The notes below the pieces were generated by a model, which had not been told where the DNA came from, ran no database searches, and was given only the letters and a program-made list of their open reading frames with translations. Of a stretch of DNA of 64,000 nucleotides, positions 2,417-61,532 are shown one piece after another. The position numbers were made by a program, and so were the translations under genes. Each line of letters opens with the position of its first letter. The first letter of the stretch is position 1. Origin of the DNA: Styela clava (Eukaryota); NCBI RefSeq assembly GCF_964204865.1, contig NC_135255.1, positions 18,476,001 to 18,540,000 on the forward strand. The letters are read 5' to 3'.

Positions 2417-3250
2417 TCAATTAAAGTTGTGGAGTTGTGAAGATTGAGAAACCTGGCATATTATAGGTTTAAGGAAGTTAAGAGCGCGAAGTGTCTCCGC
2501 AAACACGTTATAGGCTTTTGTGCAGTCATTTCCCTCCAAGATCCAGTTTCTCGCCAGCCCCTTGCCATTACCAATTTGCGCAGGATACTTTGCACACAGA
2601 TCAATTGTTTCAGTATCTTGCCCCAAACACCTGTTTGCCACTGTGACGAAAACAAATTACGATATGAATCAGCTATAAGCTGCCTTATCGCAGTTCAGGA
2701 AAGTAATATGAGTAAAAAATGAATACATTTATTATATTATAAACAAAATTGTTTATATATCACTTTTCATTACTATATTTTACCAGAAAATAGTCACTAT
2801 GATTAGATACTATACCACGTCGCTGGAACATGAAATGCTAGCCCATTTTATAGAACTGAGATAATAATTTAACACGCTTGAGTGTTCAAAATGAATATGA
2901 GGTAAAAAAGTACTGAGCCTCATTCATTAGGGTTCTGATATACAAATTGTGAAGATTTATTGGGGTCGCCTAACTTCTGCTGTACATGCGCACGTATGGC
3001 ACTAGGCTTCGAAGGTATCGAAGTGAAATTTGTATGGCCTGAACTGTGGCCTTAAAATCGAGAGTAAATCGAGAGTACTAAATTTCTAAACTTTTGAGGC
3101 ACAATATTAGATTAAAACGTATACAAAAAGTACATATTACAGTATGTTTTAACATAACTTCTTTCAAATGAAGTATATTTTCTTCTTAACTCGCGCAGTA
3201 ATTATTAATGAAATTTATATATAAATCGCTGCAGATAGGTAATGATACGA

Positions 3251-3283
<33 letters not shown>

Positions 3284-3700
3284 CATCTAGGTTCCCTATA
3301 TGGTGCGTAACTGCGCCGACCATTGGGTGTGGGTCGTCATATTTTCTAACGCCGAGCTAGATGTTCGTTCCATGTTTGAATTACATGTGTAGTTTGCTCG
3401 CATTTTGATAATACTGTTGTAATATCTGACATAGTTTGTAGACTCTGCTCAGCCTTAAAATATTCATGCTCATTAGAACAAACATTTGCTCAGTGTAACA
3501 TTTTCTTGGAGGAAATACTGCTCGTCACCCACGTTATCCGATACAACAAAAATTTAAACGGCCATTATTCACGCCACTAAATTTGGCACAATTCAGCAGG
3601 ACAGGGACATGATCTTTAGCTAATTCCTTACACAAAGGTTGCCCTTTCCAACGATTAGAAAAAAGGAAGCCTTACCTATCAATAAAAGTATGAAAAACAT
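2417..3700 (-). pseudogene. Truncated CUB-receptor family copy U1 (signal exon plus partial first CUB exon; 82 aa if read to the stop)
   Basis: Leader 3700-3676 is ATG...ATAG|GTAAGG (MFFILLLI). The acceptor cacag at 2641 gives VANRCLGQDTETIDLC...WILEGNDC, homologous to gene G (ANACLGGDIDKTIDMC...WTLRGNDC). Similarity is lost after GNDC. Confidence 0.8.
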
Positions 3701-3829
3701 TTTATCGATTCCTTGAAATATCCCGATGCAAAAGTAAGATACTTGACCCTTTAGACCACACAGTGTCTAATGACAAACAATTTCATGTATATACGCCAAG
3801 CTGTCCACATGAAAGTATAAATGAATCAT

Positions 3830-4046
3830 TTCCCGTAGTGCGTGTACCAGGTTAGGGTTAGGCCATGATTTTATTCCGATTTTCTTTATTTTAGTTCCCT
3901 ATTTTAGTTTCGATTTCGAGGACTGTAGTGTTAGCCAAGTGATATACCCTCTGCCCATAGTGTTCCGTCCCCATGCACAACTTGATGTAAAGTAGGCGAA
4001 CAAAATTGGTTACCTCCCTATTGGTACACATACTTCTGGAGCGCCC
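3830..4046 (+). mobile_element. ~215-bp MITE family with ~24-bp imperfect TIRs and internal GGTTAGGGTTAGG
   Basis: Ends tcccgtagtg(t/c)gtgtacca and tggtacacatacttctggagcgcc. Other copies at ~9585, 15030, 29077, 36805, 41358(-), 51641, 52498(-); variants at ~16078 and 16802. Confidence 0.8.
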
Positions 4047-4893
4047 CATATTTAGCGTTTGTTTGCAAGGAAATGTACAAATGACTACTAATACAACCTC
4101 CTACAGTATTTATTTTTGCTTCGTCAAAATTAAAATATCTGCGAGGGTTACCTTACAAGCTAGCTGTTTGATTTTATTTATACTAACGCCGCCTCCTTTC
4201 ATAAAAGAGAACACGGCACATTGTATGCACGTCCATATTTATTGTTTGACTACTGTATTTATTTATTGTCATTCTCTATTCAAACTGGCAATACGAAAAA
4301 TATGTCGTTTGGCACATTATTGAGTTGTCATAATGATTTTTCTCATTTTTGAAATAAAAATATGTCCTATGCTATTCCAATACCCTTTCTTCTGTGCTAT
4401 TAAAATGGAGATAACACTGGTTTCGCCTACCAACTACTGCTGTGGGCTATAGACATAAGAAAGTTGCTATGCAATACATGGAACAATGCAAGTCATTGAC
4501 AGTTTATGTGGATCTATAGAAAAGCTATTGACACAAAGTCTTGCCTTATTATGGAGTTCGGATGTTTCAAACAATGAATCGCGCTCAACCTCCACCGTTT
4601 TCTTTCATATACACTCGTGTTGATTTACTGTTTATAAATATTGCGTGGCTGCGCATTGTAAGTAGTAAATACTTACCTGAGTGCATTACCTAAAAACATT
4701 ATAAAAAATCATGTATCAATACTGGTATGCAAAGACTCAATGAAACTTCGCCGCCCATATTTAAGAATAAAAGGTTACATTTTTGTAGGGCAATGCTTGG
4801 TTTTATCGTAACTAGTTATATATCAACCTGGTAGCGTGATTAAAATGTGACCAGAACCCTTATTAAACTTTCTAAGCTTTGAAATCGCTGGTA

Positions 4894-5207
4894 CAGTGGT
4901 TCCCTAACTTTTTATGGCTCGTGGACCCCTTCGTGGCTTTTAGCACTCATAGGTCCCTTCCTAATCATTCCCGTGGTATTTATAGTGGTATTGTAATTGG
5001 TAGATTCCAAATCCCATAATGTACAAACAATTAATGCTCAACAAAGTGAAAACATCCTTTGAAATACCCTTATCAAGCAATGAAACTAAGAAGAACGGTG
5101 TGTTTTCTTGTAAAGTGAAAAGCAAAATCAGTTCTACGCCTAGCACTGTGCCCCTTCCCATATACTGTTCTGTGGGTCACTTGAGAAGCCATGGTTGGGA
5201 ACCACTG
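4894..5207. mobile_element. hAT-type MITE (also at 10649-10962)
   Basis: TIR cagtggttccc / gggaaccactg; 8-bp TSD cgctggta / cgctagta (7 of 8 match). Confidence 0.85.
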
Positions 5208-8171
5208 CGCTAGTATGACCCCATATAGTATGGCATGACGTATTGATATGATACTGATTTGAAACACTTATCCGAATTCATCAGAAAAATATATTCTTTC
5301 AAATAGAAGATCTGTTCATCTAAAAATTCAATTTACTTTGCTTTTACATTATTTATTATTAATGTACCTTCTGTTCAGAAAACATACATAATCCGGCGTG
5401 ATTCAAAAATTTCGTTTTCGACTCTTAACTAACAAAAAAAGAAGGTGGCAAAACCATCGGAGTCTGAAAGACTCAAAATGTATAACACCAATATATTGAC
5501 TTCTCCTGGCTTGAGTCAAATTAAGAACTCATGTGCTGGTGTAGAAATGAAGATACTGCCAGGAAGCAAGGTCTGATGACGTAGAATGCGCAGCAGGGAT
5601 GATAAAGATAAATGTTGTTATTACTGCAACTAACATCTCGGGGGTGACTGAAAATGGTCCAAACTAAGGGTTCTACTATCGGCACGTCAGTAAAGGACAC
5701 TCCAACGTTCAAGTCACGGTATTTTGACACTAGAACAGGGACTACTACATAAGTATATATTAGAGCTATAATCAAGGAAGATCATAAAAATAGACATTTC
5801 GATTTAAAAAGTTCTACCCCAATTTGGTATGGAAGATAAGAGAAGGGCAGTAATTTTTGTTCTCTTTCGTTCGCCTATAGTTGTAGAAAATGTACAATGC
5901 TCACCCAATAGAATGTGAACAATAAATTATTGAGAAATAATATGATGAGAGAATTGAAATGTGACGTCATGTTTCTAACTGTGACGTAAGTATATTGGGT
6001 TTCTCGTTTTGTTGCGAAAAATAATAATCTTGCTTATTTCCTAAATATATCGTTATGTTATATGCCTCATTCATCACCTCCGAAAACCATCCATCTTGAC
6101 AATTTCTCAGAAACGACTGGTATTGTTCAGCGACATACTTTAACAATGAACTAGTACACTGATTTACAACCTATGTTCCGGAAACTACGTAAAGGCAAGC
6201 TTCCTCGACAAACCTGCTTGGAATGCAAGATAGTTTATTCAAATATTTGTAAGGACTTTTGAATGAGAGATTCAACATTGCGATAAGTTGCTAAATGAGG
6301 TTGAATACGCGTATTCGAATAAGACATCCTTACCTCAGTAAATCCAATACAGTGCTTAACATACGCAAAGAAAAATATATTTTGCTTACCAAACAGAACT
6401 CTGAAAATAAACCTATTTTAACTAACATAAGAAACAGTCCATATTGAGTCAAAAAGTTCAAGGTTAGTTTTAAATATACAACAAACCGTATTAAAGGAAT
6501 TGCAGATACGTTGCATGAGAACTAGTAACTGAAGTCGATATCCTTGCATCGGTTGATGGTTTTGCCCGATACAGATATATATTATGAAGCGTGCCAATAA
6601 CAGTCGATATAATTTCATACATATTCCTTCTATGTTTCAACGTAAGTTGAAAACGAACTGCTTCGAATTCTGGTCGGGGAAATCACATTACAAATTATAG
6701 ATATATCGCAAAACATAACATGAATTATGGCCATATTTTGAGCTATCTAGTCAAGTACAAATATAACAGGCCTGATTAAGATCGAGAGTACTAAACTTTT
6801 AAGGGCACAATATTACATGCGTTAATACGTATACAAAAAATACATATTATAGTATGATTTAACATTACTTCTTTCAACCTAAATATATTTCTTTTTAAAC
6901 TCGCGCGGTAATTTTAAAGGACTTTTATATAAAATTTCTGCATATATATAAGATATATATATCGGGTGTGTAACTGCGTCGACCATTTGCGCAGTAAAAT
7001 CTCATTCTCACGCACACAAAGTGTGGGTCCTCATATTTTCTAACGCCGAGATAGATGTTCGTTCCATGTTCAAGTTACATGTGTACTTTGCTCGCATTCT
7101 GATAATACTGTTGTAATATTTGACATAGTTTGTAGACTCTGCTCAGTCTTAAAATATCCATGCTCACTAGAACAACTTTTGCCCACTGTAACATTTTTTT
7201 AGACGAAACACTGCGCGTCACGCAAGTTATCCGATACAACAAAAATTTATACGGCCATTAGTCACGCCACTAAATTTGACACAATTCAGCAGGTCAGGAA
7301 TATGATAATCAGCTAATCCTCTACAAAAGGTTGCCCTTTCCAACGAATAAATAACAGAACCTTACCTATCAATAAAAATATTGAGAAAATTTTATCTATT
7401 TCTCGAAATATTCCGATGCAAAGATACCAGTGATATATCTACAACCCTTATAAGGGGTGAACACCCCCTTGATTTTGAGTTGTGACACCTCACTTTATTC
7501 CCAGAATTCAACAAAATTGTGTTTAAATATCCAGAAAGTAGATTAGTTTGATCAGTCAAATACATAACATATTTTTACAATAGTTACAAATAGTTTTATC
7601 ACTGATAGCAAGATTTCTACCACCCCCTAAATTTAGAATCCTCCCCCGCCCCGCCCCCCTAAAATAAAAAGCTGGGGAACCTATTAGAATGACAACTAGT
7701 AAACTACTCCATAAAGGGCTATAACTTCACCATCTGTCCGTGGACAGGAATAGGTATGTCGACGTAAACAATTTTTTTTACAATAGTTTTGTGTTTTTCT
7801 CATTACATATTAGGAGTTTAGCGTTAGGAGTGTGAAACATATTTTCCGTTTTAAGCAAAGTGTTTGCTTATAGATAAGGGTTAAGGTTTAGCTCACAAGT
7901 CCTAATTGAATGTTGCTATTGTTTTCATTTTTAGAATTAAAATTAAGTAAGTTGTCGACCTGTTTTTTAGATTAGTCGTAAACTTTAGCAACCCATTTCT
8001 TTACAGAGTCTACCATAACCATTTCAAACTGTTTCTGTAAGGACGTCGAGTACTTTCGCTACTGTTTCCACAATGCAAATCATCATTTTTCAACACATAT
8101 AAGCGACTATGTCGGGTATATCCGTCTATTTCATGCTTGTAGACTAGGTATTTCACTGATTGCAATAGACT

Positions 8172-9005
8172 TCAATTAAAGTTGTGGAGTTGTGAAGATT
8201 GAGAAACCTGGCATATTATAGGTTTAAGGAAGTTAAGAGCGCGAAGTGTCTCCGCAAACACGTTATAGGCTTTTGTGCAGTCATTTCCCTCCAAGATCCA
8301 GTTTCTCGCCAGCCCCTTGCCATTACCAATTTGCGCAGGATACTTTGCACACAGATCAATTGTTTCAGTATCTTGCCCCAAACACCTGTTTGCCACTGTG
8401 ACGAAAACAAATTACGATATGAATCAGCTATAAGCTGCCTTATCGCAGTTCAGGAAAGTAATATGAGTAAAAAATGAATACATTTATTATATTATAAACA
8501 AAATTGTTTATATATCACTTTTCATTACTATATTTTACCAGAAAATAGTCACTATGATTAGATACTATACCACGTCGCTGGAACATGAAATGCTAGCCCA
8601 TTTTATAGAACTGAGATAATAATTTAACACGCTTGAGTGTTCAAAATGAATATGAGGTAAAAAAGTACTGAGCCTCATTCATTAGGGTTCTGATATACAA
8701 ATTGTGAAGATTTATTGGGGTCGCCTAACTTCTGCTGTACATGCGCACGTATGGCACTAGGCTTCGAAGGTATCGAAGTGAAATTTGTATGGCCTGAACT
8801 GTGGCCTTAAAATCGAGAGTAAATCGAGAGTACTAAATTTCTAAACTTTTGAGGCACAATATTAGATTAAAACGTATACAAAAAGTACATATTACAGTAT
8901 GTTTTAACATAACTTCTTTCAAATGAAGTATATTTTCTTCTTAACTCGCGCAGTAATTATTAATGAAATTTATATATAAATCGCTGCAGATAGGTAATGA
9001 TACGA

Positions 9006-9038
<33 letters not shown>

Positions 9039-9455
9039 CATCTAGGTTCCCTATATGGTGCGTAACTGCGCCGACCATTGGGTGTGGGTCGTCATATTTT
9101 CTAACGCCGAGCTAGATGTTCGTTCCATGTTTGAATTACATGTGTAGTTTGCTCGCATTTTGATAATACTGTTGTAATATCTGACATAGTTTGTAGACTC
9201 TGCTCAGCCTTAAAATATTCATGCTCATTAGAACAAACATTTGCTCAGTGTAACATTTTCTTGGAGGAAATACTGCTCGTCACCCACGTTATCCGATACA
9301 ACAAAAATTTAAACGGCCATTATTCACGCCACTAAATTTGGCACAATTCAGCAGGACAGGGACATGATCTTTAGCTAATTCCTTACACAAAGGTTGCCCT
9401 TTCCAACGATTAGAAAAAAGGAAGCCTTACCTATCAATAAAAGTATGAAAAACAT
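8172..9455 (-). pseudogene. Truncated CUB-receptor family copy U2 (repeat-unit copy of U1)
   Basis: Same sequence as U1 at offset +5755 (leader 9455-9431, exon from 8395). Confidence 0.8.
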
Positions 9456-12400
9456 TTTATCGATTCCTTGAAATATCCCGATGCAAAAGTAAGATACTTG
9501 ACCCTTTAGACCACACAGTGTCTAATGACAAACAATTTCATGTATATACGCCAAGCTGTCCACATGAAAGTATAAATGAATCATTTCCCGTAGTGCGTGT
9601 ACCAGGTTAGGGTTAGGCCATGATTTTATTCCGATTTTCTTTATTTTAGTTCCCTATTTTAGTTTCGATTTCGAGGACTGTAGTGTTAGCCAAGTGATAT
9701 ACCCTCTGCCCATAGTGTTCCGTCCCCATGCACAACTTGATGTAAAGTAGGCGAACAAAATTGGTTACCTCCCTATTGGTACACATACTTCTGGAGCGCC
9801 CCATATTTAGCGTTTGTTTGCAAGGAAATGTACAAATGACTACTAATACAACCTCCTACAGTATTTATTTTTGCTTCGTCAAAATTAAAATATCTGCGAG
9901 GGTTACCTTACAAGCTAGCTGTTTGATTTTATTTATACTAACGCCGCCTCCTTTCATAAAAGAGAACACGGCACATTGTATGCACGTCCATATTTATTGT
10001 TTGACTACTGTATTTATTTATTGTCATTCTCTATTCAAACTGGCAATACGAAAAATATGTCGTTTGGCACATTATTGAGTTGTCATAATGATTTTTCTCA
10101 TTTTTGAAATAAAAATATGTCCTATGCTATTCCAATACCCTTTCTTCTGTGCTATTAAAATGGAGATAACACTGGTTTCGCCTACCAACTACTGCTGTGG
10201 GCTATAGACATAAGAAAGTTGCTATGCAATACATGGAACAATGCAAGTCATTGACAGTTTATGTGGATCTATAGAAAAGCTATTGACACAAAGTCTTGCC
10301 TTATTATGGAGTTCGGATGTTTCAAACAATGAATCGCGCTCAACCTCCACCGTTTTCTTTCATATACACTCGTGTTGATTTACTGTTTATAAATATTGCG
10401 TGGCTGCGCATTGTAAGTAGTAAATACTTACCTGAGTGCATTACCTAAAAACATTATAAAAAATCATGTATCAATACTGGTATGCAAAGACTCAATGAAA
10501 CTTCGCCGCCCATATTTAAGAATAAAAGGTTACATTTTTGTAGGGCAATGCTTGGTTTTATCGTAACTAGTTATATATCAACCTGGTAGCGTGATTAAAA
10601 TGTGACCAGAACCCTTATTAAACTTTCTAAGCTTTGAAATCGCTGGTACAGTGGTTCCCTAACTTTTTATGGCTCGTGGACCCCTTCGTGGCTTTTAGCA
10701 CTCATAGGTCCCTTCCTAATCATTCCCGTGGTATTTATAGTGGTATTGTAATTGGTAGATTCCAAATCCCATAATGTACAAACAATTAATGCTCAACAAA
10801 GTGAAAACATCCTTTGAAATACCCTTATCAAGCAATGAAACTAAGAAGAACGGTGTGTTTTCTTGTAAAGTGAAAAGCAAAATCAGTTCTACGCCTAGCA
10901 CTGTGCCCCTTCCCATATACTGTTCTGTGGGTCACTTGAGAAGCCATGGTTGGGAACCACTGCGCTAGTATGACCCCATATAGTATGGCATGACGTATTG
11001 ATATGATACTGATTTGAAACACTTATCCGAATTCATCAGAAAAATATATTCTTTCAAATAGAAGATCTGTTCATCTAAAAATTCAATTTACTTTGCTTTT
11101 ACATTATTTATTATTAATGTACCTTCTGTTCAGAAAACATACATAATCCGGCGTGATTCAAAAATTTCGTTTTCGACTCTTAACTAACAAAAAAAGAAGG
11201 TGGCAAAACCATCGGAGTCTGAAAGACTCAAAATGTATAACACCAATATATTGACTTCTCCTGGCTTGAGTCAAATTAAGAACTCATGTGCTGGTGTAGA
11301 AATGAAGATACTGCCAGGAAGCAAGGTCTGATGACGTAGAATGCGCAGCAGGGATGATAAAGATAAATGTTGTTATTACTGCAACTAACATCTCGGGGGT
11401 GACTGAAAATGGTCCAAACTAAGGGTTCTACTATCGGCACGTCAGTAAAGGACACTCCAACGTTCAAGTCACGGTATTTTGACACTAGAACAGGGACTAC
11501 TACATAAGTATATATTAGAGCTATAATCAAGGAAGATCATAAAAATAGACATTTCGATTTAAAAAGTTCTACCCCAATTTGGTATGGAAGATAAGAGAAG
11601 GGCAGTAATTTTTGTTCTCTTTCGTTCGCCTATAGTTGTAGAAAATGTACAATGCTCACCCAATAGAATGTGAACAATAAATTATTGAGAAATAATATGA
11701 TGAGAGAATTGAAATGTGACGTCATGTTTCTAACTGTGACGTAAGTATATTGGGTTTCTCGTTTTGTTGCGAAAAATAATAATCTTGCTTATTTCCTAAA
11801 TATATCGTTATGTTATATGCCTCATTCATCACCTCCGAAAACCATCCATCTTGACAATTTCTCAGAAACGACTGGTATTGTTCAGCGACATACTTTAACA
11901 ATGAACTAGTACACTGATTTACAACCTATGTTCCGGAAACTACGTAAAGGCAAGCTTCCTCGACAAACCTGCTTGGAATGCAAGATAGTTTATTCAAATA
12001 TTTGTAAGGACTTTTGAATGAGAGATTCAACATTGCGATAAGTTGCTAAATGAGGTTGAATACGCGTATTCGAATAAGACATCCTTACCTCAGTAAATCC
12101 AATACAGTGCTTAACATACGCAAAGAAAAATATATTTTGCTTACCAAACAGAACTCTGAAAATAAACCTATTTTAACTAACATAAGAAACAGTCCATATT
12201 GAGTCAAAAAGTTCAAGGTTAGTTTTAAATATACAACAAACCGTATTAAAGGAATTGCAGATACGTTGCATGAGAACTAGTAACTGAAGTCGATATCCTT
12301 GCATCGGTTGATGGTTTTGCCCGATACAGATATATATTATGAAGCGTGCCAATAACAGTCGATATAATTTCATACATATTCCTTCTATGTTTCAACGTAA

Positions 12401-13156
12401 GTTGAAAACGAACTGCTTCGAATTCTGGTCGGGGAAATCACATTACAAATTATAGATATATCGCAAAACATAACATGAATTATGGCCATATTTTGAGCTA
12501 TCTAGTCAAGTACAAATATAACAGGCCTGATTAAGATCGAGAGTACTAAACTTTTAAGGGCACAATATTACATGCGTTAATACGTATACAAAAAATACAT
12601 ATTATAGTATGATTTAACATTACTTCTTTCAACCTAAATATATTTCTTTTTAAACTCGCGCGGTAATTTTAAAGGACTTTTATATAAAATTTCTGCATAT
12701 ATATAAGATATATATATCGGGTGTGTAACTGCGTCGACCATTTGCGCAGTAAAATCTCATTCTCACGCACACAAAGTGTGGGTCCTCATATTTTCTAACG
12801 CCGAGATAGATGTTCGTTCCATGTTCAAGTTACATGTGTACTTTGCTCGCATTCTGATAATACTGTTGTAATATTTGACATAGTTTGTAGACTCTGCTCA
12901 GTCTTAAAATATCCATGCTCACTAGAACAACTTTTGCCCACTGTAACATTTTTTTAGACGAAACACTGCGCGTCACGCAAGTTATCCGATACAACAAAAA
13001 TTTATACGGCCATTAGTCACGCCACTAAATTTGACACAATTCAGCAGGTCAGGAATATGATAATCAGCTAATCCTCTACAAAAGGTTGCCCTTTCCAACG
13101 AATAAATAACAGAACCTTACCTATCAATAAAAATATTGAGAAAATTTTATCTATTT

Positions 13157-13356
13157 NNNNNNNNNNNNNNNNNNNNNNNNNNNNNNNNNNNNNNNNNNNN
13201 NNNNNNNNNNNNNNNNNNNNNNNNNNNNNNNNNNNNNNNNNNNNNNNNNNNNNNNNNNNNNNNNNNNNNNNNNNNNNNNNNNNNNNNNNNNNNNNNNNNN
13301 NNNNNNNNNNNNNNNNNNNNNNNNNNNNNNNNNNNNNNNNNNNNNNNNNNNNNNNN
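13157..13356. other. Assembly gap (200 N)
   Basis: Run of N inside the tandem array. Confidence 1.
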
Positions 13357-16300
13357 GAAGGGCAGTAATTTTTGTTCTCTTTCGTTCGCCTATAGTTGTA
13401 GAAAATGTACAATGCTCACCCAATAGAATGTGAACAATAAATTATTGAGAAATAATATGATGAGAGAATTGAAATGTGACGTCATGTTTCTAACTGTGAC
13501 GTAAGTATATTGGGTTTCTCGTTTTGTTGCGAAAAATAATAATCTTGCTTATTTCCTAAATATATCGTTATGTTATATGCCTCATTCATCACCTCCGAAA
13601 ACCATCCATCTTGACAATTTCTCAGAAACGACTGGTATTGTTCAGCGACATACTTTAACAATGAACTAGTACACTGATTTACAACCTATGTTCCGGAAAC
13701 TACGTAAAGGCAAGCTTCCTCGACAAACCTGCTTGGAATGCAAGATAGTTTATTCAAATATTTGTAAGGACTTTTGAATGAGAGATTCAACATTGCGATA
13801 AGTTGCTAAATGAGGTTGAATACGCGTATTCGAATAAGACATCCTTACCTCAGTAAATCCAATACAGTGCTTAACATACGCAAAGAAAAATATATTTTGC
13901 TTACCAAACAGAACTCTGAAAATAAACCTATTTTAACTAACATAAGAAACAGTCCATATTGAGTCAAAAAGTTCAAGGTTAGTTTTAAATATACAACAAA
14001 CCGTATTAAAGGAATTGCAGATACGTTGCATGAGAACTAGTAACTGAAGTCGATATCCTTGCATCGGTTGATGGTTTTGCCCGATACAGATATATATTAT
14101 GAAGCGTGCCAATAACAGTCGATATAATTTCATACATATTCCTTCTATGTTTCAACGTAAGTTGAAAACGAACTGCTTCGAATTCTGGTCGGGGAAATCA
14201 CATTACAAATTATAGATATATCGCAAAACATAACATGAATTATGGCCATATTTTGAGCTATCTAGTCAAGTACAAATATAACAGGCCTGATTAAGATCGA
14301 GAGTACTAAACTTTTAAGGGCACAATATTACATGCGTTAATACGTATACAAAAAATACATATTATAGTATGATTTAACATTACTTCTTTCAACCTAAATA
14401 TATTTCTTTTTAAACTCGCGCGGTAATTTTAAAGGACTTTTATATAAAATTTCTGCATATATATAAGATATATATATCGGGTGTGTAACTGCGTCGACCA
14501 TTTGCGCAGTAAAATCTCATTCTCACGCACACAAAGTGTGGGTCCTCATATTTTCTAACGCCGAGATAGATGTTCGTTCCATGTTCAAGTTACATGTGTA
14601 CTTTGCTCGCATTCTGATAATACTGTTGTAATATTTGACATAGTTTGTAGACTCTGCTCAGTCTTAAAATATCCATGCTCACTAGAACAACTTTTGCCCA
14701 CTGTAACATTTTTTTAGACGAAACACTGCGCGTCACGCAAGTTATCCGATACAACAAAAATTTATACGGCCATTAGTCACGCCACTAAATTTGACACAAT
14801 TCAGCAGGTCAGGAATATGATAATCAGCTAATCCTCTACAAAAGGTTGCCCTTTCCAACGAATAAATAACAGAACCTTACCTATCAATAAAAATATTGAG
14901 AAAATTTTATCTATTTCTCGAAATATTCCGATGCAAAGATACTTTTGTTCTTTTTAAACCACACAGTGTCTAATGACAAACAATTTGATGCACGACAAGC
15001 TGTCCACATGAAAGTATAACTGAATCATTTCCCGTAGTGCGTGTACCAGGTTAGTGATAGGCCATTATTTTATTCCGATTTCTTTTATTTTAATTCCCCA
15101 TTTTAGTTTCGATTTTGAGGACTGTAGTGTTAGCCAAGTGATATACCCTCTGCCCATAGTGTTCCGTCCCCATACACAACTTGATGTAAAGTAGGCGAAC
15201 AAGATTTGTTACGTCCCTATTGGTACACATACTTCTGGAGCGCCCCATATTTAGAGTTTATTTGCAGAAAATGTACAACAGACTACTAATACAACCTCCT
15301 ACACCTACAGTATTTATTTTTGCTTCGTCAGAATTAAAATATCTGCGAGGGTTACCTTACAAGCTAGCTGTTTGTTTATAGTTATACTAACGCCGCCTTC
15401 TTTCATAAAATAGAACACGGCACATTGTATGCACGTCCATATTTATTGTTTGACTATTTATATCTTGTCATACTCTATCCAAACTGGCAATACGAAAAGT
15501 ATGCCGTTTGGCACATTATCGAGTTGTCATAACAATTTTTCTCTTTTTTGAAATAAAAATATGTCGTATGCTACTCCATTACCCTTTCTTCTGTGCCTTT
15601 GAAATGGAAAGAAATGAACATTTGGGGAGAAAACAAACATAATCGAAAATTCCAACCGACTTCTAAATAACAACAAAAAAATTGATGTCAAAAACAGACT
15701 CAAAATATATAACACCAATATCCCGTCTTGAGTTATTTTAGGAATAAATGTGCTGTTTTAGAAGTGGTAATACTGCCAAAGGCAGGTTCTGTTTACGTAG
15801 AATGCCGTAGGAGAAGGGGGTTCTAAGGGTTTTACTATCGGTACAACAGCAAAAGACACTCCAACGTCCAAGTCTCAATATTTTAACAGGATTACAGGGA
15901 CTGCTACATAAATATAGATTAGAGCTATAATCACGAAAGATCACAAAAATAGACAATACCTATTTAAAAAATTCTTTCCTCAATTTGATAAGGAAAAATA
16001 GAAGTTCGTTCGCCTACAATTGTAGGAAATGTGCATTGTTCACCAAATATAATGTGACAATAAATTATAAAGAAATAGGCGCTCCCGTAGTATGTATACC
16101 AAAATGGCGCCCAACATGATAACCCTAACCTGGTAAACATACTATGTTCAGGCTGTGCGCCATCTTGGTACACACACCACTGGAGCACCGAGAAATAAAA
16201 TTACGAGTGAAATGAAATGTGACGTCATGTTTGAAATTGTGACGTAGGTGCATGCGGGTTTCTCGTTTTGTTGCGAAACATAATATTTGTGATGTTTTCC

Positions 16301-39768: not shown

Positions 39769-41592
39769 CTAGTTGACAAAACAATAAATCGCCCCCTCTC
39801 TCTCGCTGTTTTATGAGGAGCCAAACCTTCGCTTCGTGTAAGGTCCTAATCATCCATGTTTTAAAATGAATTTAGTTAAAAGAAAAGTGGGACGAACGGA
39901 ACCGTGTTTCCCTCTAATTAGAAATCATTTGAAATCGATTTTCCATTTTAGGTACGAAGAAAGAGACTTTTTTCGACAACTACAATCACCAACAAGAATA
40001 GTTTAGCAAAACGATCCTGCAGAATCTACACTTTGTGCCCAATAAGTCTTCTTCCACCTACTTTTTTAAGTACTCAATCTTTGAAATTGATTTTCCATTC
40101 GATGCTGGGAAAAAGAGACTTGATTCAACAACAACAATCACGCAAACAACAAGAAGAATTCAACAAAACGTTCCAGCAACATGTACACTTCGTGCACAAT
40201 AATATTAATGAATTTTAGATGAAAATGTAACAGTATTTTTGAAAACACGTGAGTATTATGACTTACCATGGATCGCGTCTTCCATACACGGTAAGTATTC
40301 GTAATCTATCTGAAATTTCCGAGGATACATCAATGCATAGAAATTAGGCGATGGTTTGAACTTTACAGTAAATGAATCAATTTCTTCATAGTTGTGGAAT
40401 CTTTGTGTACATTTCTGCGGCATTTTTATGTTTTCTAATTTTCGACATTTTTGATTGCTCCCGTGGAATATAAGACACGTGCCATTGGAAATCGTTGCAA
40501 TGTTTGTTCCTTGAAATAAGATAGTTTTTAATAAAACACAGTTAATAACTACGGGGATAAATCGGCTCAAATATTAGTACGGTAGGTGTTAAACGTGTAC
40601 TATGTAAGATCGTACTACCAAGAATGAATCATACGTTAGTTGGAAATCGAGTATAAATTTGATTTCTGCAACAAATTTTTTAGATATCACTGACGTTGGT
40701 TTTAGAAAATTCGCTTTTCTCAGCAACCAATGGACCAATTTCGGTATTTGACGACGGTCAAGTCTACTAAGAGGTAACTCTTTTTTTCAAATTTCTTTTC
40801 ACGAAAACACTTTGCTGTTTTATTATAAATAATAGGGAGCACTTTTTATTAGTCACGCCGGTATCGATGCGTGACCTACGCGTCCATTTATTCGATAATT
40901 CCCCTCTTTTTATATAAGAAAATAGGAAATGAGAGTAGTTGTTGTACAACTAGTTACCGTTAACGAATAAACTTCCAGCAAGATACGTGGTCTTAGATAT
41001 GAACATCATATTCATTGTACGAACAAACAAAACCAATGAAGAATTCTGGGAAAATTTGTGATGAGGAAGATTCCACGTTCTGCAGTTGCTTGACCGAAAC
41101 CTTTCTGGATAGTTTGGTGATTGAATGGACCCGTTTGTTGCTGTCATGCTTTCCATTATCGACGTGGACACGCTGATATAACGTTTTGGATCAACAACGC
41201 TGTGTGAATATAAAATGAAAAATGGTCAATTTTGTATTTCAATCCTTGACGATCTGAATATTACTAATTTATAATTATAATGGATAAAACAACTTGCTAA
41301 TATTCAAATTGATATATATAATGCAATGTTATTTATTGAATCTGTAACAAAACTGGCACTCCAGAAGTATGTGAAAGTAACTAATTTTGTTCGCCTACTT
41401 TACGTCGAGTTCTGTAAAGGGAATGAAGCCCATGGGCAGGGGCTATGTATTTATTTACCTGGCAAACACAGACAGTCCCCGAACTCGTAGTAGAACTAAA
41501 ATACAAAAAATCGGAATAAAATTATGGTCTAACCCTAATCTGGTACACATACTACGGAAGTATATGAAAAAATTTATTAACAAACTAAACTG

Positions 41593-47600: not shown

Positions 47601-48667
47601 TTCCCATCCCAATTGGATAATTACTAATTTGTTATTTTAAAACGTTGGGTGGGGGTGGGGGGTGTTTTTCTCAAATCTCACATTTTTGCATTGGTGCCGG
47701 GGGCTTTGTACAAAAGATCCCGCTGTTCTTTTTCCCCAATGATGCTTATCCGTTCAATTCAGGTTCTCAACCAGTGGGCCACAGACCTATTAGAAAATGC
47801 TAGAGTTGTTGATAAAGTTAGTTAAAATTGATGATTAGTAACAATTGATGATGATGTTTTTTGTTACAGGGTAGTTTTCCCTTACTTATTATTAAAGTGA
47901 AAGTGTCTATTTTTGCAGGAGGAATTCTATGTTTTTCTTAAAGTTTTTTTCCAAACTCGAAAGAGTTAGTTGGCCACAGAATTTTTGTCCAACGAAAATG
48001 GGACACGAAAGAAAAAGGTTGAGAACCACTGCTAGTTTTAAGTAATTGGAACTAGTATATGATATACGGTGCTATATTTTGCCAACATTATAGGATCAAA
48101 TAACATCGCATTAATATTGTTGTTTCTGTAACTTACCTGTACGGTGATTATGCCTTACTTTAATTAAGCAAAGTTTGATTGAAACCCGAATATCAGATTT
48201 TGATGTTGGGCGTTTTTTCTTTAAAGGAGTAAAAGGTGTTATATCTATTATTAAGAACAGGATTGTTTTAAATATCATATTGTAAAATTAACATTCTCTA
48301 TCATACGTATGAATAGCAATCAGATATTCTTGAATTGAATTAGCAACTAACCTTGAAAGCGTGTGCTGTGTGTTGCAATAAAATTACTATTTCTTTATTC
48401 AGATGCCAAATGGTCAATCGCCAATTACAAATACTGCAAAATGAGAAGCATGGACAATCTACAAATATGGAAACAACGGAAGAAGGTGAAAATCGGCACT
48501 CATTCAAATTAGCCTGACCCACTGGTAGAATAAACTGCTCCGAAACCAGCAACGTTACAAACCAAAGAAACGAACATACAATTTATAGTGTTATTAATAA
48601 ACAAGCAAAACAAAACAACGTGAAATCTGAGCAAAAGATTGTTGTCAACGAAATATATAATATGTAG
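44609..48667 (+). pseudogene. Gene F: decayed CUB/TM receptor
   Basis: Exon-2 remnant ~44630-44786 reads ASLNFPE…Y*…FVQMD…GSLKIS. TM exon 47265-47470 has two frameshifts (LLTIVFGILLGIVLMVLL). Last exon 48403-48667 has an internal TGA at 48515, then HTIYSVINK…KIVVNEIYNM*. Leader and exon 3 were not identified. Confidence 0.75.
47760..48031. mobile_element. hAT-type MITE
   Basis: Inverted ends ggttctcaacc / ggttgagaacc. Confidence 0.6.
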
Positions 48668-51839: not shown

Positions 51840-51871
<32 letters not shown>

Positions 51872-53589
51872 GAACGAACAGTTTTAAGCACTTGAAAGAT
51901 TATAGGTTATCATATGATTGTTCTTGAATATATTACATTGGGGCCCATCTTGTTTCGTTCTCTATCTAGCTTTACGGGTTCTCAACACATGACTCGACAT
52001 AACCAACTTATATTATCAGTTAACATAAAAAGCACCGCACAGTAGAACAGTTACAAAATGACTACCACGTTTTACAAGGACAATCAAAGACATCAAACAC
52101 AGGTGGCGCTATAGGGTACATTACGTCATATCGTAACACATCTATGAGCTCCGAAAATGTATTATGAAAACAGATAGCAAAATGAAACTATTCTCTGTTG
52201 TTTTCTAATTTAGACGGCAAAACAAATCCGACTCTAGAAATCAGAGCATTGGGCAACACGATATCTCATCATATAAACGAATGGTTTTAATCACTTATTC
52301 AAAAATTATTCAAGTTTTTGACCAAGTTTAATTGGACATTTGACACTGGATTGTTCTTGAGTATATTGGATGTGTGAGTAATTTTTGACAGAGTATTTCA
52401 CATCATCCTACAAAGACGGTCAAGAGTGCAGTTTATGAGAAGCATTGTCCCGAGTACATAACACCATTAAGTGGTACAGTTCAAAGCAATCAATAGGGGG
52501 CGCTCCAGAAGTGTGTGTGTACCAATATGGAGGGAACTAATTTTGTTCGCCTACTTCACATCAAGTTGTATAAAGGGACTGAATCCTATCGGCAGGGGGT
52601 ATGTTCATTTGGCTAACACAGACAGTCCCCGAACTCGTAAATGAACTAAAAAAAAAAGGAAAATCGGAATAAAATTATGACCTAACACACATTACGGGAG
52701 TACGCAATAGGATTTATGACCCGGGTTGAGAAATTTGGGAACAACTGTCATAAACGAAACTCGTCCAATACTATATTTAGTGACAGTACACATTGTACTG
52801 ATACTGAAACGCGGGTATATGAAACATTCGAATTCAGTAGCTGACTATACTCATACTCCTATTGCTTACACCCGACTACATTGAGCGCCTATGACGCATT
52901 CTATTATTGCGCATTGCAAAGGATGAGCATTATATTACCGCAAACACTCCCCGTTTGATTTTGAAAACCGATGCACATAGTATTGTCGCATTATTCAGAG
53001 CGCTTGTACCACAGGAGGTATTTGGTTATGCGATCTAAGTGGTTGTGTTATTTTAGTTAAACTAGGATCGGAATTCTATGAGGATATCTTTATAAACAAG
53101 TGAACACTTTGAGCAAGTGAGGTCGCGTACCAAAGTGACACTCTATCGATACTATAGTATATACTGGGGAAAATAAAGAGGATATGATTTTATGTTTACC
53201 TAGAGGAGAGAAAAACCGCTAGAGAAGCCAGATAATTTGGCAATCACCTGTCTACTGTTGTTTTACTAATTCCGAATCGGAAGAGATACATAGTTGAATT
53301 GCCCCTTTTGTCGCGGTAATATAATTCTTCGTAAACTATGTAGATCTTCGTGTGTCCATAGGTGGATTAATTAAATATTCCAACACTTACAAGGCAAAGA
53401 TTTTTCACGATAAAAGTGCCTAAAAGCAAGTAAATATTCTTTTTAAAGGTTAATACCAACTAAATATTGACGCGTTGACTAACTGCTCCGACGACCCGAG
53501 TGATTCTACCTTCATAACTTCGCTGTCGTGAAACAAGGGTCATACTTCTGCATTCTCCGATTTGAACGATGCAACCACCGTTGGATAAA

Positions 53590-55990
53590 ATGCTTGCGAT
53601 GATTCTCTTGATAAGTAAGCATTCGTTTTTATTATTTGTCGCGCATATACCCCGACAAATTTTAATACAATGTCGCTAAGTGAGCCCGCACATAAAATAG
53701 GTCTGATGAATGATCGATTACAAATTTGCTATGCTGCCCATAGCTCTCTAACTGTAAATAAGAAATATATATATTTAATTGTATCGGAAAATATAATAAT
53801 TTTTTAATATTTAGAGAATATAAATATTATCATTTATTTTGTCATTTACATTTATCCATTCCTTCTATTTTGGCGCAGTGGCAAATGCTTGTCTGGGTGG
53901 CGATATTGATAAAACAATTGATATGTGCGAGAACAACCGTGAAGAAATCAGTCACAAATATGTAAGATGGACATCGACCGCAACATGGACTTTGAGGGGA
54001 AATGACTGTGCTTACCCAAATAGCATGCTTTTACTGAAACTCACCGAGATGGATCTTTACAAGACTTCATATTGTTACGGTTATTTGCAGATATCAGGTG
54101 AAATAATTATAACTTGACCTATTTTTGTATTACACATTATTTCATCCACATTGATAGCAGTCCATGTAAGCAAAGACATGGTCATATTTTATGCGGTACA
54201 TGTAAGCTTTTGAAAACCTAATATATCCCAATGTCTACTGTGAATCAGAGATAAATGAAGCTGAAATAAGTGAATATGTTTATTGATTAATAAAACTATC
54301 TCTCTAATACTTCGTCATATCAACATTGTAACTGGAATAGTTGAACAAATTTTTCACGAAAAATCATCTGAATTTCAGCATTTCGCTCAAACATAAATAT
54401 TTGCGCCGTATATGCGGGCTGTTGCTTCCTAATAACAGCAAACTCTTCATCTATAAACGGTTTCTTCGTGCAAATGTCTGACTGCAAACGGATTTACTGG
54501 ATTTTTCGTGATGATATATTTCCTGTAACAATTACATACAGTCGATATGAGTTGAATGACCACAGTTTCAAAATAGACGTTAGATATCTTTCACAAAGAA
54601 CTGAAACTACTACAGCAAGTAAGTGTTTCTATATATTCTTTTAGTCTTCAAGAAAATTTTTTATTAGCGGCATTGGCATTATATTGCTTATTACTTATAT
54701 TGCCTTTTCGTAAGACTTTTTTATCATTTTTATTTGAGTGATGAAAGTTGGAATATGTTCAGTATGAGAAAAAATCAGAATTTAATTACAAGAGAGCTAC
54801 GCCCAAATGTATGGACACGTCTGTTCGCAGTACAGTACGGTTTACCGTATCGTCAGATCACAGTCTACAAATATATTCACACCAAGCGAAGCAGTACAGT
54901 CGGACACAAAATGGCGTCCGCGAAGCAGTACAGTCGGACACAAAATGGCGTCCGATGTCCGTAGAACGTTTAGTGACGTCATAGAAAACAAATCTCACAG
55001 AGCTAACAGAAATATTTGAAATAAATAAAAGTAATAGCCTTCTGGAGAAAAACTTCATCTTTAACCACTAAAAATTTCAAAGCAATTGGTCCAGTAATCA
55101 AAAATAATAAGATTTTCCACTAGGTGTCCAAAAAGTGTCAAAGAACAACAAATCGATCGTTATGTCCACTACGTGTCCAATAATTTTAAACTAATGCGTA
55201 AATCATCCATTTAGTTGTGAAACTCTTTATTTCCACACGGAAAATATTTATAGTCTTAACTTTATAGTCTGTACTTTCCATTAAAAAATGCTGCATTGTA
55301 TGTAACACATATTTTCATTTTATTTTACGCGATTGTACCACCGACAACAGCTCCCACACAAAGTTCCCCAATCGAGCGCACTCTCAGCATCATACTTGGA
55401 ATCCTAACAGGAATTGTGTTGGTTGCTTTATTGGCTGTCATCATAAGGTGAATACAATTATTTGAACTAGGATGTCGTATCTTAACAGAACAATTGGAAA
55501 AAATTGACTGATTACTAGACAAAAAAGATAGATACCAGCCAATAATATGTGGCTATCGTAGAGGAATACAATTCGTTAAGAACAAAATTTATTTAAAATA
55601 ATATTATAATATTATCCCAATTAACTATTAGACATAACGTATTTTGACCGCAAAGTTCCAATTACCTATTTTCGTCCTCGCTGTGTTTCTATGTCCTCTA
55701 CTCTCCGGCTTGAAGTAAATACCTACCGATACCACATTCAATCTCAAAACAGTAATAAACCTATTATTATTCAAAGGTATCGAAGCATTATACAAAAACT
55801 CCATGCAAACTCGGACGCTCTGAACGCAACAGCAACCTTAGAAACCGCAAGGGGAAGTGGCGAACAGAATCCGTACGACTTTGCCAATGAAGAAATCGCA
55901 GGAACAAGCAACAACGCTTCCGCAAACGTACCGGATGCGGTTTACAGCGTTGTAAACAAACAAGCAAAAAAGAGCGCGAAGCAACAGTGA
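53590..55990 (+). CDS. Gene G: CUB-like/TM receptor with a short stalk and an ITIM-like tail (~264 aa); probably intact through a cryptic acceptor
   Basis: Exons 53590-53614 (MLAMILLI), 53879-54097, 54379-54618, 55351-55447 (TM LSIILGILTGIVLVALLAVII) and 55777-55990 (…QNPYDF…DAVYSVVNKQ…*). Phases are consistent and there are no stops. Confidence 0.8.
54788..55181. mobile_element. Insertion in gene G intron 3, absent from paralog H; contains a 34-bp tandem duplication
   Basis: The flanks are contiguous in H (~60655-60690). Inverted motif tggacacgt / acgtgtcca; gcgaagcagtacagtcggacacaaaatggcgtcc occurs twice. Confidence 0.65.
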
Positions 55991-56037
55991 GATTGTATCT
56001 CACTGAGACAAAACAAACTTGCACAACTTTCTCGGGA

Positions 56038-57734: not shown

Positions 57735-58790
57735 AACCGTAACTCGTTCTATACAGTATTTAGTAAGAGTACACAGTGTACTGATACTGAAACACAAGCA
57801 TCTTGAGCTTTCGAATTCAATAGCGGACCATAGGATAGGATTTATATATTTATCCCGGGGGAGAAAAAATCCGTTAAGACGGCTTAATCATATGACGAAT
57901 CCCGGCTTCTCATCCGGTTACCAGTCGATGTCGGATATGGTATTAGTTAGTTATTTTCTTTCGCAAGCATGGACTTGACCACATTTCTGCTTCTATTGGT
58001 CAAACCTGGGTGAGTTACTGTTGTTGTGAGGGTCTATGACCCTAGTTGAAATGTTCGGGAACCACTGACATAAACGAAACTCGTCATATACTATATTTAG
58101 TAAGAGTACACAGTGTACTGATACTTAAACATTCGACTTCAATAGCTAACCATACTTCTATTGATCAAACCCAGATGAGCTATAGTTGCAAGAGTCCATG
58201 ACCCTAGTTGAGATGTTTGGAAATCACTGACATAAACGGAACTCGTTCTATACTATATTTATTAAGAGTGCACGGTTTACTGTTACTGAAACACGAGCAT
58301 CTGAAACATTCGAATTCAATAGATGACTATACTCATACTCCTATTGCCTACAACTGGAGATTGTAGACATTGAACGCATATCTATGACGTATTTTATTAT
58401 TGCGCATTGCAAGGGAAGACGTATTATATTGTCTCCTGGACTTACCGTTTGATTTTGAAAACCGATGCAAGTAGTATTGTTGCTTTATTCAGAGCGCTTG
58501 TACTATAAGTGCTATTTCGGTATGTTATCTATGTCTTTTCCGACAGACCGAATTTTTTATCATCCTACACAAAGCGGTCTTAGCGTGCAGTTTTGATGAG
58601 AAACATTGTCTTAAATGCGTCGTTGAGCGTCCATGACATATTCTATTATTGCGCATTGCAAAGGAAGGGCATTATATTACCACCTACACTCACCGTTTGA
58701 TTTTAAACCCGATGCACGTAGTATTGTCGCATTATTCAGAGTGATTGTACTCTTGGTGCGCTACCTCGGTATGCTACTTCAGCGATTGTG
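57735..58790. repeat. Local tandem duplications upstream of gene H
   Basis: The motif aactcgt…ata(c)tatatttagtaagagtacacagtgtactgatac occurs three times (57740, 58078, 58240) versus once upstream of G (~52758). The block 58385-58530 is repeated at 58633-58760. Confidence 0.7.
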
Positions 58791-59325
58791 TGATCTCGGT
58801 AATTTTTGCTCGGGTTAGGATCTGAATTCTATGAGAATGTCTTTATGAATTAAGATTACGTCAAGTGAAGTGAGATTGCGTACCAAAGTGGCACCCTATA
58901 GTAAATATAAGGAAAATGAATATGATTTTATATTTACCTAGAGCAGAGGGAAAACGATAGGGAAGCTACTTCATTTTGCCCGTTTATTCCGAGTGAGATG
59001 TAGAAAAGCCAAACAGTTAAACATTGCATGAACGGAGACGTATTACATTCACTATGTGTTAGTAGTTGTTTACTTCACTTGCTTATACTATGTAGATCTT
59101 CATATGCCCACACACGAGGCAGAAAATATAAATGAGAAAAATGTATAAAAGCAAGTAAATCATCTTCTTTTTAAAGATAATACTAACCAAACATTGACGC
59201 GTTGATTTACTGCTTCGACGACTCCACCCATTCCACCTTAATAATATAGCTGTCTTGAAAATCGTGAAGCAAGTCTCTTACTTTTACATTCTCTTATTTG
59301 AACGATGCAACTACAATTTGATAAA

Positions 59326-61532
59326 ATGCTTGTAATAATTCTCGTGATTGGTAAGGATTCGTATTTTTTAATCACGTAGAAAGCAAACCCTTTTTAATAA
59401 GGCAAACAATGCCAAAGTTGAATATAAATTATCAAGTGAGTCCACATAAAAAAGTCATACAAATTGCCCTGAAAAGGACGACTAAAAAGTGGTTATGGCG
59501 CTGAATAACTTCAAATGTGAGGCATAATTTTATATTTACATCTAATAAATCGTACATTTTAAACATATAAAATATAAATATTTCAGTCATTTTGTCGTTT
59601 ATATTCAACCATTTCTCTTGTTTTGGCAAAGTGACAAATACTTGTCTGGGTCGAGTTACTGAAAAGACAATTGATGTGTGTGCGGAAAATCATGCACATA
59701 TCAGTCACAATCCTAGTGGATGGGGGACTTGGGATTGGAATTTGGATGGGCATGGCCGTACATACCCTAATAGTATGCTTTTACTCAAACTCACGGAGAT
59801 GAATCTTTACAACTATCAACATAATTTTTGTTATGGTTCTATGAAGATATCAGGTAAAACAATTATTGATTGTGGTAATTTGAAAGTTGAAGTACGATCT
59901 CTGGTATTGTAAACTGATATCGTATGGAAATATTAAGATCGACATGCACTAAGCTTCACCTACAATGATAGAAACAAAGTTACCGTTCACACTTCATACG
60001 GTGCATGTAGGCTATAGAAAACTCAATATATACCAATGTCTACCTGGGAATGTCCACACAATTTGTTACAGTAATTTGAAAATACCGATGTTCATAAAAT
60101 GTACAAAAATTGCTTCAGTGGTTAGAATATTATTAGTGGATAGGCAGGCATCTGTATATGACTGAGAAAATATCGCACTGATGATTTGATCGTGTGCTTT
60201 ATCCTATCAACATTGCGAATGAGCTACGTACCCAACTGAAGCCAATTTTTAAGTCTCATCATCATTTCAGCCTCTGAAGAAAACACGAACATTTGTTGGT
60301 ATAGCACAGGCGGTTGCTTTTTAATCACAGCAAACTATCCAACCAATATAAATGTTACCTTCGTACAAATGTTTGAATGCAAATGGATTTACCGAGATGA
60401 TATATTTCCTGTAACTATTAGCTACAAGAGAACATAGAGTAACCACCACAATTTCACAATGGACGTCAGATATCTTCTAGAAAGAACTGAAACTACTGCA
60501 GCAAGTAAGTACTTCTATTATCTTTTATTCCTCGAGACATTTTTGCGTAGATGATTATTTTATTAGTTGCTTTGGTGTATATTACCTTTTCGTAATACTT
60601 TTTCAGTATTTTTGAGTGATGAAAGTTGGAATATGCTTAGTATATGAGAAAAAAATCAGAATGTAATCATAATTTTAAACTATTGAGTAAATCATTCATT
60701 TAGTTGTGAAACTCGTTATTTCTACTCGAATAATATTTACAGTCTTAAAACACCAATAAAAAATTCTGACTGTCTTCCTTATTAAAAAATGTATTTATCA
60801 CATATTTTTATTTTACGCAATAGCACCAACGACAACAGTAAAAATCACAACACAAGCCGCAACCAAATCTTCGATCAAAACAACAACAGCCAACGAACTT
60901 GTTTCAATTCCTCAGCAAATACCCCAAAGTTCACCCATCGAACGAACGCACTCTCAGCATTATACTTGGAATCCTGCTAGGAATTGTGTTGGTTGCTCTA
61001 TTGGCTGTCATCATAAGGTGAATAAAATTATTTAAACCAGGATTTCGTATCTAAACAGAACATTGAAGAAATTTGACTGTATACTAGGAAAAAAGAGACA
61101 GAGAGCAGCCAAAATCGAACTGGCTAGAATTTGTTAACAACTTGATTTGATATAAATATGATCACAATTCACTATACATCAAAATATTTTGACCTCAAAT
61201 TCCCAGCTATATATATTTTCGCCCTCGTGACTCTACGACCACTATTCTGCTTTCAGTAGATATCGACCGAAACTACACTCAATCATAACGATAATAACAA
61301 ACCTATTTTTATTTAAAGGTATCGGAGCATCGTGCGCAAACTCCGTGCAAACCCGGACTCTCAGAACGCAACAGCAACCTTAGAAATAGCAGGTCGAAGT
61401 GGCGAACAAAATCCGTACGACTTTGCCAATGAAGAAGTCGCAAGAACAAGCAACAATGCTTCCGCAAACGTATCGGATGCGGTTTACAGCGTTGTCAACA
61501 AACAAGCAAAAAAGAGCGCTATGCCGCAGTGA
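59326..61532 (+). pseudogene. Gene H: tandem paralog of G, inactivated
   Basis: Exons 59326-59350, 59632-59853 (Cys2 changed to Arg), 60271-60504 (in-frame TAG at 60435), 60824-61017 (4-bp cgaa duplication before the TM) and 61319-61532. Confidence 0.85.

Follow-up and report, generated by a model that had tools for sequence, protein, structure and literature searches.

A species-restricted family of candidate recognition receptors with a CUB-like ectodomain and a two-tyrosine tail in Styela clava

What does a cluster of short, divergent exons in an ascidian genome encode? The solitary ascidian Styela clava belongs to the Styelidae, and the exons lie in one stretch of its 377-Mb genome, contig C6 (NC_135255.1):18,476,001-18,540,000. 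This stretch of 64,000 nucleotides, hereafter the window, has a GC content of ~35% and contains no long open reading frames (ORFs). We propose, with a probability of about 0.6, that the exons belong to a species-restricted multigene family of cell-surface recognition receptors, in which a variable CUB-like domain is joined to a tail with two tyrosines, modules are exchanged between members and the family evolves by birth and death. In such receptors the variable domain would bind an extracellular ligand and the tail tyrosines, once phosphorylated, would recruit SH2 or PTB proteins. A role in immunity or in self/non-self discrimination is our leading guess.

We located the family elements by searching the window with candidate exon peptides in tblastn, together with splice-site mapping. 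Eleven elements lie between 2,447 and 61,532, comprising three intact genes (B, D and G), six damaged or fragmentary copies and two that are carried by a repeat (Table 1). The initial annotation of this DNA had described a cluster of about ten copies, counted as three intact, five damaged and two repeat-borne; the cluster is real and the count of three intact copies stands, with one further damaged or fragmentary element added. Complete copies have five exons each, with canonical AG/GT sites and the intron phases 1-1-1-2 that had been read from the sequence. The same annotation had called the family hidden and undescribed. It is hidden from the ORF list, but four of the genes (B, D, G and K) were already present in RefSeq as uncharacterized loci. 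It is undescribed in the literature, where our search found no paper on the family, but RefSeq lists the genes as uncharacterized proteins.

The gene models were checked independently with a profile built from six exon-2 peptides, which was searched against 1.84 billion representative proteins. Eight genuine matches were returned, all of them S. clava entries named "uncharacterized protein" with lengths of 184–297 residues. The RefSeq protein of gene G equals our model residue for residue over all four junctions, and the RefSeq proteins of B, D and K reproduce their models likewise. The matching entries are predicted (XP_) models, and the junctions rest on splice-site logic and RefSeq models. 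These searches were done exon by exon, and the Pfam, folding and alignment analyses used the RefSeq full-length proteins. Large bacterial matches to the profile (P0007, P0008, P0011 and P0012), which are Chitinophaga type IX secretion system (T9SS) repeat proteins with PKD-like/HYR domains, were summed from short repeat matches and were rejected as spurious.

A complete gene is predicted to encode a type I membrane glycoprotein of 260–300 residues. The order of its parts is a signal peptide, one strongly diverged CUB-like β-sandwich (exons 2 and 3), a stalk that is rich in Ser/Thr/Pro and varies in length, a transmembrane (TM) helix and a tail. The TM helix is followed by R-Y/F-R-K/R, and the tail of 55–75 residues holds two conserved tyrosine motifs. 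Family copies share 20–50% identity, and the description of the cluster as strongly divergent and rich in pseudogenes is borne out.

The window is part of a family cluster of ~360 kb on C6, in which further complete genes occur on both strands at 18.215–18.567 Mb, where half of the neighbouring DNA was sampled. Across the genome, the exon-2 profile gave at least 46 matches in four clusters: ~22 on C6 at 18.20–18.54 Mb, ~20 on C1 at 27.77–27.93 Mb, three on C3 and two on C16. The matches on C1, C3 and C16 translate to the family signature W-x-L...C...SVLL...C-x-GSL-x-I-x-G and not to canonical CUB. At C1:27,768,000-27,927,500, ~20 near-identical exon-2-like pieces (…IWKLNTDSCTSVNSVLL.KI..NNLNQNSQCIGSLKITG) lie on one strand, 3–13 kb apart, and this array represents a tandem subfamily of more recent origin within the family. 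We had considered whether the C1 array might be a cubilin-like multi-CUB gene that bridges to canonical CUB. Its translation gives further family members, so it provides no such bridge. Neither the exon-2 profile, searched against the representatives above, nor a full-length profile had a genuine match in a species other than S. clava. The profile searches therefore uphold the lineage-specific distribution first suggested, and support restriction of the family to the S. clava lineage as far as protein database searches reach.

Comparison of family members reveals that their parts have not travelled together. D and P0006 have identities of 23% over the ectodomain and 89% over the TM helix and tail; for P0006 and K the values are 80% and 28%, and for G and P0024 they are 28% and 68%. 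Judged by these alignments, the ectodomain and TM/tail modules differ in history and have been shuffled between members. Phase-1 introns flank the domain exons, which makes an exchange of ectodomain and TM/tail modules possible. P0006, together with P0014, represents an older RefSeq annotation of LOC120331778, in which a K-type ectodomain is joined to a D-type TM helix and tail; the current model at that locus is gene D. P0006 is either a true mosaic paralogue in another individual or assembly, or a chimeric old model, and no copy at 90% identity or above was found in the DNA sampled, which covered half of the neighbouring DNA. The G and P0024 pair is free of that weakness, as both belong to the current annotation and have contiguous exons.

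The rates of change also differ along the gene. Between G and the pseudogene H, nucleotide identity is ~73% in exons 2–3, which is not above that of the introns (58–78%), and 86–88% in exons 4–5. The ratio of nonsynonymous to synonymous substitution (dN/dS) is 0.56–0.63 for exon 2 and 0.25–0.42 for exon 5, from two pairs that each include a pseudogene. This pattern indicates weaker constraint on the ectodomain. Birth and death is the best-supported account of how the family evolves.

Two tyrosine blocks are the sole tail segments that are conserved across subfamilies at 20–30% identity, and this conservation argues for function. Block 1 reads x-[V/I]-Y-[S/H/A]-[V/T/S]-[V/I]. Block 2 lies ~20 residues on, at the C-terminal side, and reads V-V-N-E-L-Y-x-[L/M], frequently ending the protein two residues past the tyrosine. 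We surveyed 14 informative tails from the window and its neighbours, defining the ITIM (immunoreceptor tyrosine-based inhibitory motif) as [S/I/V/L]xYxx[I/V/L] and the ITSM (immunoreceptor tyrosine-based switch motif) as TxYxx[V/I]. Block 1 fits YxxPhi in 12 of these tails. Block 2 is present in nine, eight of which have the NxxY form, with S replacing N in the ninth (C). The two motifs are EPVYSVI and VVNELYNL in B, DTIYHTV and VVNQLYTMAP in D, SLYSVI and VISELYNL in C, and HTIYSVI and VVNEIYNM in F. Gene G has NPYDFA and DAVYSVV, and in G-type tails the NPYDFA sequence lies 23 residues upstream of the second motif. The tail of K is without family motifs. The ITIM/ITSM tails of the initial annotation are thus found in a minority: D and F fit ITSM and C fits ITIM, while B (PVYSVI) and G (AVYSVV) miss both at position -2. 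The TIYHTV sequence of D recurs in P0006 and P0025.

The ectodomain was assigned to the CUB fold from structure prediction. The AlphaFold2 model of G, which was made from a 12-sequence family alignment, has a predicted local distance difference test (pLDDT) score of 73–92 over residues 25–160 and contains nine strands. Comparison of this model with 48,161 chains using VIA-align placed CUB domains in all of the top 14 positions, with Z of 8.5–9.7 and a root-mean-square deviation of 2.3–3.0 Å over 100–107 residues. These matches (Kremen, GPR126, TSG-6, C1s, neuropilin-1/2, MASP-1, MAP-1, cubilin and spermadhesin) span the whole domain, and are followed by SID1, GOLD and collagen-binding sandwiches at Z of 6–8. 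Foldseek also returned CUB domains first, from Neto2, neuropilin, C1r, TSG-6, MASP and spermadhesin (E of 5e-4 to 1e-2), with the top match, Neto2, aligned across the CUB domain and the TM helix. Sequence methods give fainter signals in the same direction. Alignment of the family with seven canonical Styela CUBs by hhalign, a comparison planned beforehand, produced one collinear alignment of 97 columns, which is weak (P 0.015), and the named nearest clusters by ESM features are CUB at 0.85–0.87, which we take as a lead only. The K type retains the G-x-I-x-SPNYP motif. An intron splits the canonical Styela CUB near the junction of ...DYxE and VxDG in phase 0, and the family domain is split 1–2 codons later in phase 1, a likeness that is suggestive only. 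A search of PDB sequences with the family profile yielded TM-helix noise alone.

The architecture first proposed, of signal peptide, CUB domain, stalk, TM helix and tail, therefore stands in its order of parts, with the CUB-like fold best seen in G, whereas the family stays below the Pfam threshold for CUB and does not keep its cysteine pattern. The four canonical CUB cysteines are not kept. The cysteine ahead of the conserved Trp is missing save in the K type, which has C-x-x-W, and family-specific extra cysteines appear in the alignments after the W-x-L block and in exon 3. Residues of the canonical CUB Ca site are absent from the family alignments. We consider that the ectodomain is probably a strongly remodelled CUB-like sandwich, an assignment by modelled fold that falls outside the sequence criteria of PF00431.

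Several results weigh against the family being recognition receptors with a CUB-like domain. For Pfam PF00431, single exons gave no match at E up to 10, and all full-length RefSeq proteins scored below the gathering score of 21.4 bits; the best of them reached 13.7 bits (E 0.079) and 12.9 bits (E 0.14), in the K type only and at its N-terminal G-x-I-Q-SPNYP motif. The genome has 137 canonical PF00431 matches, among which are half-domain exons that exceed the cut-off, and none falls within the family cluster. The background quoted by VIA-align is a Z of 7–8, so that a Z of 9.7 is only modestly higher, and the hhalign probability is just 2.9%. The K-type model has a mean pLDDT of 57 and generic jelly-roll matches at Z of 7 or below, which supports neither side. 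Strict ITIM or ITSM fits are found in 3 of the 14 tails, one of which (C) belongs to a pseudogene, and YxxPhi and NxxY also serve as sorting signals. Finally, dN/dS of exon 2 is not above 1, and positive selection on the ectodomain, which we had considered, was set aside as none is demonstrated.

The tails bear most directly on the alternative that fares best, although we judge it unlikely, in which the proteins are endocytic, scavenger or adhesion receptors. Block 1 would then be an AP-2 sorting signal of the YxxPhi type, and PTB adaptors would bind VVNELY as an NxxY signal, of the kind found in the tails of LDLR and integrin beta. The prevalence of YxxPhi and NxxY over strict ITIM/ITSM fits is in line with this, and a full YxxPhi or ITIM is impossible at the second tyrosine where it lies two residues from the C-terminus. 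CUB domains occur commonly in receptors of the endocytic kind, and one of these, cubilin, is itself among the fold matches. However, a clustered family with extreme ectodomain divergence, pseudogenes and module shuffling is more like recognition or immune families than cargo receptors, and the ~20-residue spacing of the tyrosines suits tandem-SH2 proteins too. As far as can be read from its motifs, the chemistry of the tail fits SH2/PTB signalling and AP-2/PTB sorting about equally.

In our view, an ectodomain that is a generic jelly-roll of separate descent from CUB, its likeness being convergent or an artefact of the model, is improbable. The Pfam scores and the missing cysteine pairs and Ca-site residues would be expected of such a domain, the K-type model is equally close to many unrelated sandwiches, and the G model had few sequences behind it. 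Set against this are the unbroken run of CUB domains that heads the matches of the better (G) model and covers the entire domain, the collinearity of the hhalign alignment, the CUB motifs kept by the K type and the near-coincident internal intron, which differs in phase.

The proposed family of recognition receptors can be compared with several described systems. In Botryllus schlosseri, the Fester family and Fester co-receptors (FF/FcoR) have ectodomains of immunoglobulin (Ig)-like and sushi domains, and FcoR tails carry a core-1 motif, YxxI/L/V, and a core-2 motif, [A/D]VYxxV, the latter paired 29–33 residues apart at the C-terminus (PMC12582321). Both families occur in Styelidae, and both are large, clustered and divergent, with intergenic recombination, copy-number turnover and type I proteins with tyrosine-motif tails. 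DAVYSVV, present in G, H and two neighbours, fits the core-2 motif, and most S. clava tails contain a match to core-1. However, the S. clava ectodomain matches CUB in the G model and not Ig or sushi, and a single core-2-like motif is present in tails of the G type and in one B-type neighbour (L009), the other conserved tyrosine being in NPYDFA or VVNELY. S. clava is also solitary, without colony fusion. By published descriptions rather than sequence homology, FF/FcoR appears to be the nearest described system in concept.

KIR, LILR, Ly49, SLAM and CD300 resemble the S. clava family in their clusters, birth and death, pseudogenes and divergent ectodomains on conserved signalling tails, to which D, F and C add some ITSM or ITIM fits. 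They differ in that the S. clava ectodomain is neither Ig nor C-type lectin, and most of its tails miss the -2 residue of ITIM/ITSM. NETO1/2, neuropilins, CDCP1, DCBLD2 and Kremen are alike in being type I TM proteins that bear a CUB-type sandwich, and CDCP1 and DCBLD2 signal through tail tyrosines. Each of these is conserved, occurs in few copies, has several domains and scores as CUB in Pfam, whereas the S. clava family has one domain, fails Pfam and is massively expanded in one species.

Spermadhesins bring in a third alternative, that the family comprises proteins for recognition at the gamete surface or for self-sterility in this hermaphrodite ascidian, rather than somatic immune receptors, which we hold to be quite improbable. 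In spermadhesins a single CUB domain is the whole recognition unit of a rapidly evolving clustered family; these sperm-coat proteins are among the best fold matches of G (Z 8.7), and fast divergence and lineage restriction in a clustered family are typical of reproductive proteins. Spermadhesins are, however, secreted proteins without a TM helix or tail and are found in mammals only, and among the gamete recognition proteins known from ascidians a signalling-type tail would be unusual. A role as auxiliary subunits of ion channels or receptors, to which the Neto2 match of CUB plus TM helix might point, is very improbable indeed, since NETO, SOL-1 and LEV-10 are conserved and low-copy with two CUBs, plus LDLa in NETO, whereas this family has one domain in ~50 copies with many pseudogenes in one species.

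A bolder form of the recognition-receptor proposal is possible, and we advance it tentatively. The family might be a CUB-based counterpart of KIR/Ly49 or Botryllus FF/FcoR, with ~50 germline receptors whose modules recombine via phase-1 introns and whose tails are inhibitory-like, switch-like or of other kinds, serving innate non-self, allogeneic or gamete discrimination. If true, chordates would have a third ectodomain scaffold on which polymorphic recognition is built, independent of the others. Polymorphic recognition systems, among them KIR, Ly49, Hydractinia Alr and Botryllus FF/FcoR, have originated repeatedly on scaffolds that are not related, and have clustered genes and tyrosine-motif signalling in common. 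A CUB-based family with the same behaviour in the genome, in a species closely related to Botryllus, would be one more independent case, and would make two questions tractable: whether the tail that signals is the conserved part and the ectodomain the part that can be replaced, and whether repertoires of allorecognition-type receptors are kept in solitary ascidians. Should the proteins instead be sorting or adhesion receptors, they would form a large uncharacterized species-restricted family, which would be useful for annotation and unsurprising.

Table 1 Family elements and other features of the window (window coordinates).
Feature	State	Position	Strand	Exons or parts	Remarks
Gene B	intact	17468..20004	-	20004-19959 (signal), 19132-18920 (domain N-half), 18857-18624 (domain C-half), 18370-18181 (stalk and TM), 17642-17468 (tail with stop)	splice sites and phases; RefSeq XP_039255181.2 (P0002)
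Gene D	intact	31603..34868	+	31603-31633, 32406-32621, 33082-33315, 33800-33914, 34676-34868	RefSeq LOC120331778 protein P0023
Gene G	intact	53569..55990	+	53569-53614, 53879-54097, 54379-54618, 55351-55447, 55777-55990	RefSeq XP_077970209.1 (P0001)
Gene K	damaged 5' end, signal peptide lost	38410..41200	-	41140-40958, 40509-40267, 39153-38952, 38569-38410	RefSeq XP_077969560.1 (P0005)
Copy C	pseudogene	23483..25280	+	23483-23689, 23755-23981, 24547-24778, 25109-25280	compared with B
Copy H	pseudogene	59305..61532	+	59305-59350, 59632-59853, 60271-60504, ~60930-61017, 61319-61532	
Fragment E	TM and tail only	29407..30723	-	TM exon ending at donor 30579; tail exon 29614-29407	tail motif VVNELYTM
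Fragment F	TM and tail only	47299..48667	+	stalk/TM exon ~47309-47465; tail exon ~48383-48667	in-frame stop in tail exon
Exon-2-like scrap	isolated	17776..17989	+	…ILTNQNCKSKNEV…	tblastn
Relic R1	degenerate, exon-2-like, in tandem unit	2447..2656	-		28% identical to G, E = 4e-4
Relic R2	identical to R1	8202..8411	-		one unit (5,755 bp) further
Tandem array	5,755-bp unit	1..14942			100% identity, 1-7401 = 5756-13156 (self-comparison)
Assembly gap	inside tandem array	13157-13356			

Gene K keeps a remnant of its signal peptide, ALLIQNVISAC (41200-41168), in a frame that differs from that of the domain, with a frameshift between the two; the RefSeq model lacks a signal peptide, its first residue being an internal Met at 41156. 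An undamaged N-terminus of the K type is seen in P0006. Copy C has a frameshift in exon 3, between ITVKY and FGIAIIY, and gave no confident candidate for exon 1. Copy H has an in-frame TAG at 60435-60437 in exon 3, and in its exon at ~60930-61017 the frame equivalent to that of G is interrupted upstream of the TM helix.

Mapping of the window found no domain exons upstream of fragment E. Its TM helix carries a Glu, LSIAVSALATVEAIIIAVLVFLR (TM at 30578-30646, …ALATVEAIIIAV…), and a Glu occurs at the matching position in P0010 (…FAILEANIIIG…), a full-length member of the C3 cluster. The charged TM residue is thus a trait of a subfamily, and could indicate that these proteins pair with another one in the membrane.

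A hydrophobicity scan had suggested exon-1 candidates at 31103 for D and 21301 for B, which were ruled out by the RefSeq N-termini at 31603 and 20004. The intron of K between exons 3 and 4 holds a CTGT-type microsatellite (39262-39549), one frame of which reads SVCLSVCLSVC and gave a spurious tblastn match. Elsewhere in the genome, at C3:15,714,000-15,810,000, at least eight single-exon ORFs of ~148 residues are arranged in tandem at 6–15 kb spacing, each with a canonical Pfam CUB (70–77 bits). This array is a separate expansion of canonical CUB genes in the same genome.

At its left end the window contains a tandem array interrupted by an assembly gap. The left edge of the gap (base 13156) corresponds to unit position 1646 and the right edge (13357) to unit position 87, with repeat identity extending on the right to 14942. 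As the flanks are not collinear, the unread repeat amounts to at least ~4.2 kb, to which whole units in any number may be added. The array itself, or its copy number, may be an assembly artefact. The sole family sequences within it are the two identical degenerate exon-2 pieces R1 and R2, and the 100% identity across 7.4 kb beside the gap means that they may be a single locus doubled by the assembler. Mapping of the window placed no family exon less than 4 kb from the gap and no reading frame across it.

Inside the 5,755-bp unit, positions 1036-1667 resemble 3086-3732 at 81%. A repeat of ~200 bp with 77–86% identity is interspersed on both strands at 3831-4052, 9586-9807, 15030-15251, 29078-29271, 41378-41562 and 52492-52688, and is probably an element of the short interspersed nuclear element (SINE) or miniature inverted-repeat transposable element (MITE) kind, dispersed across the cluster.

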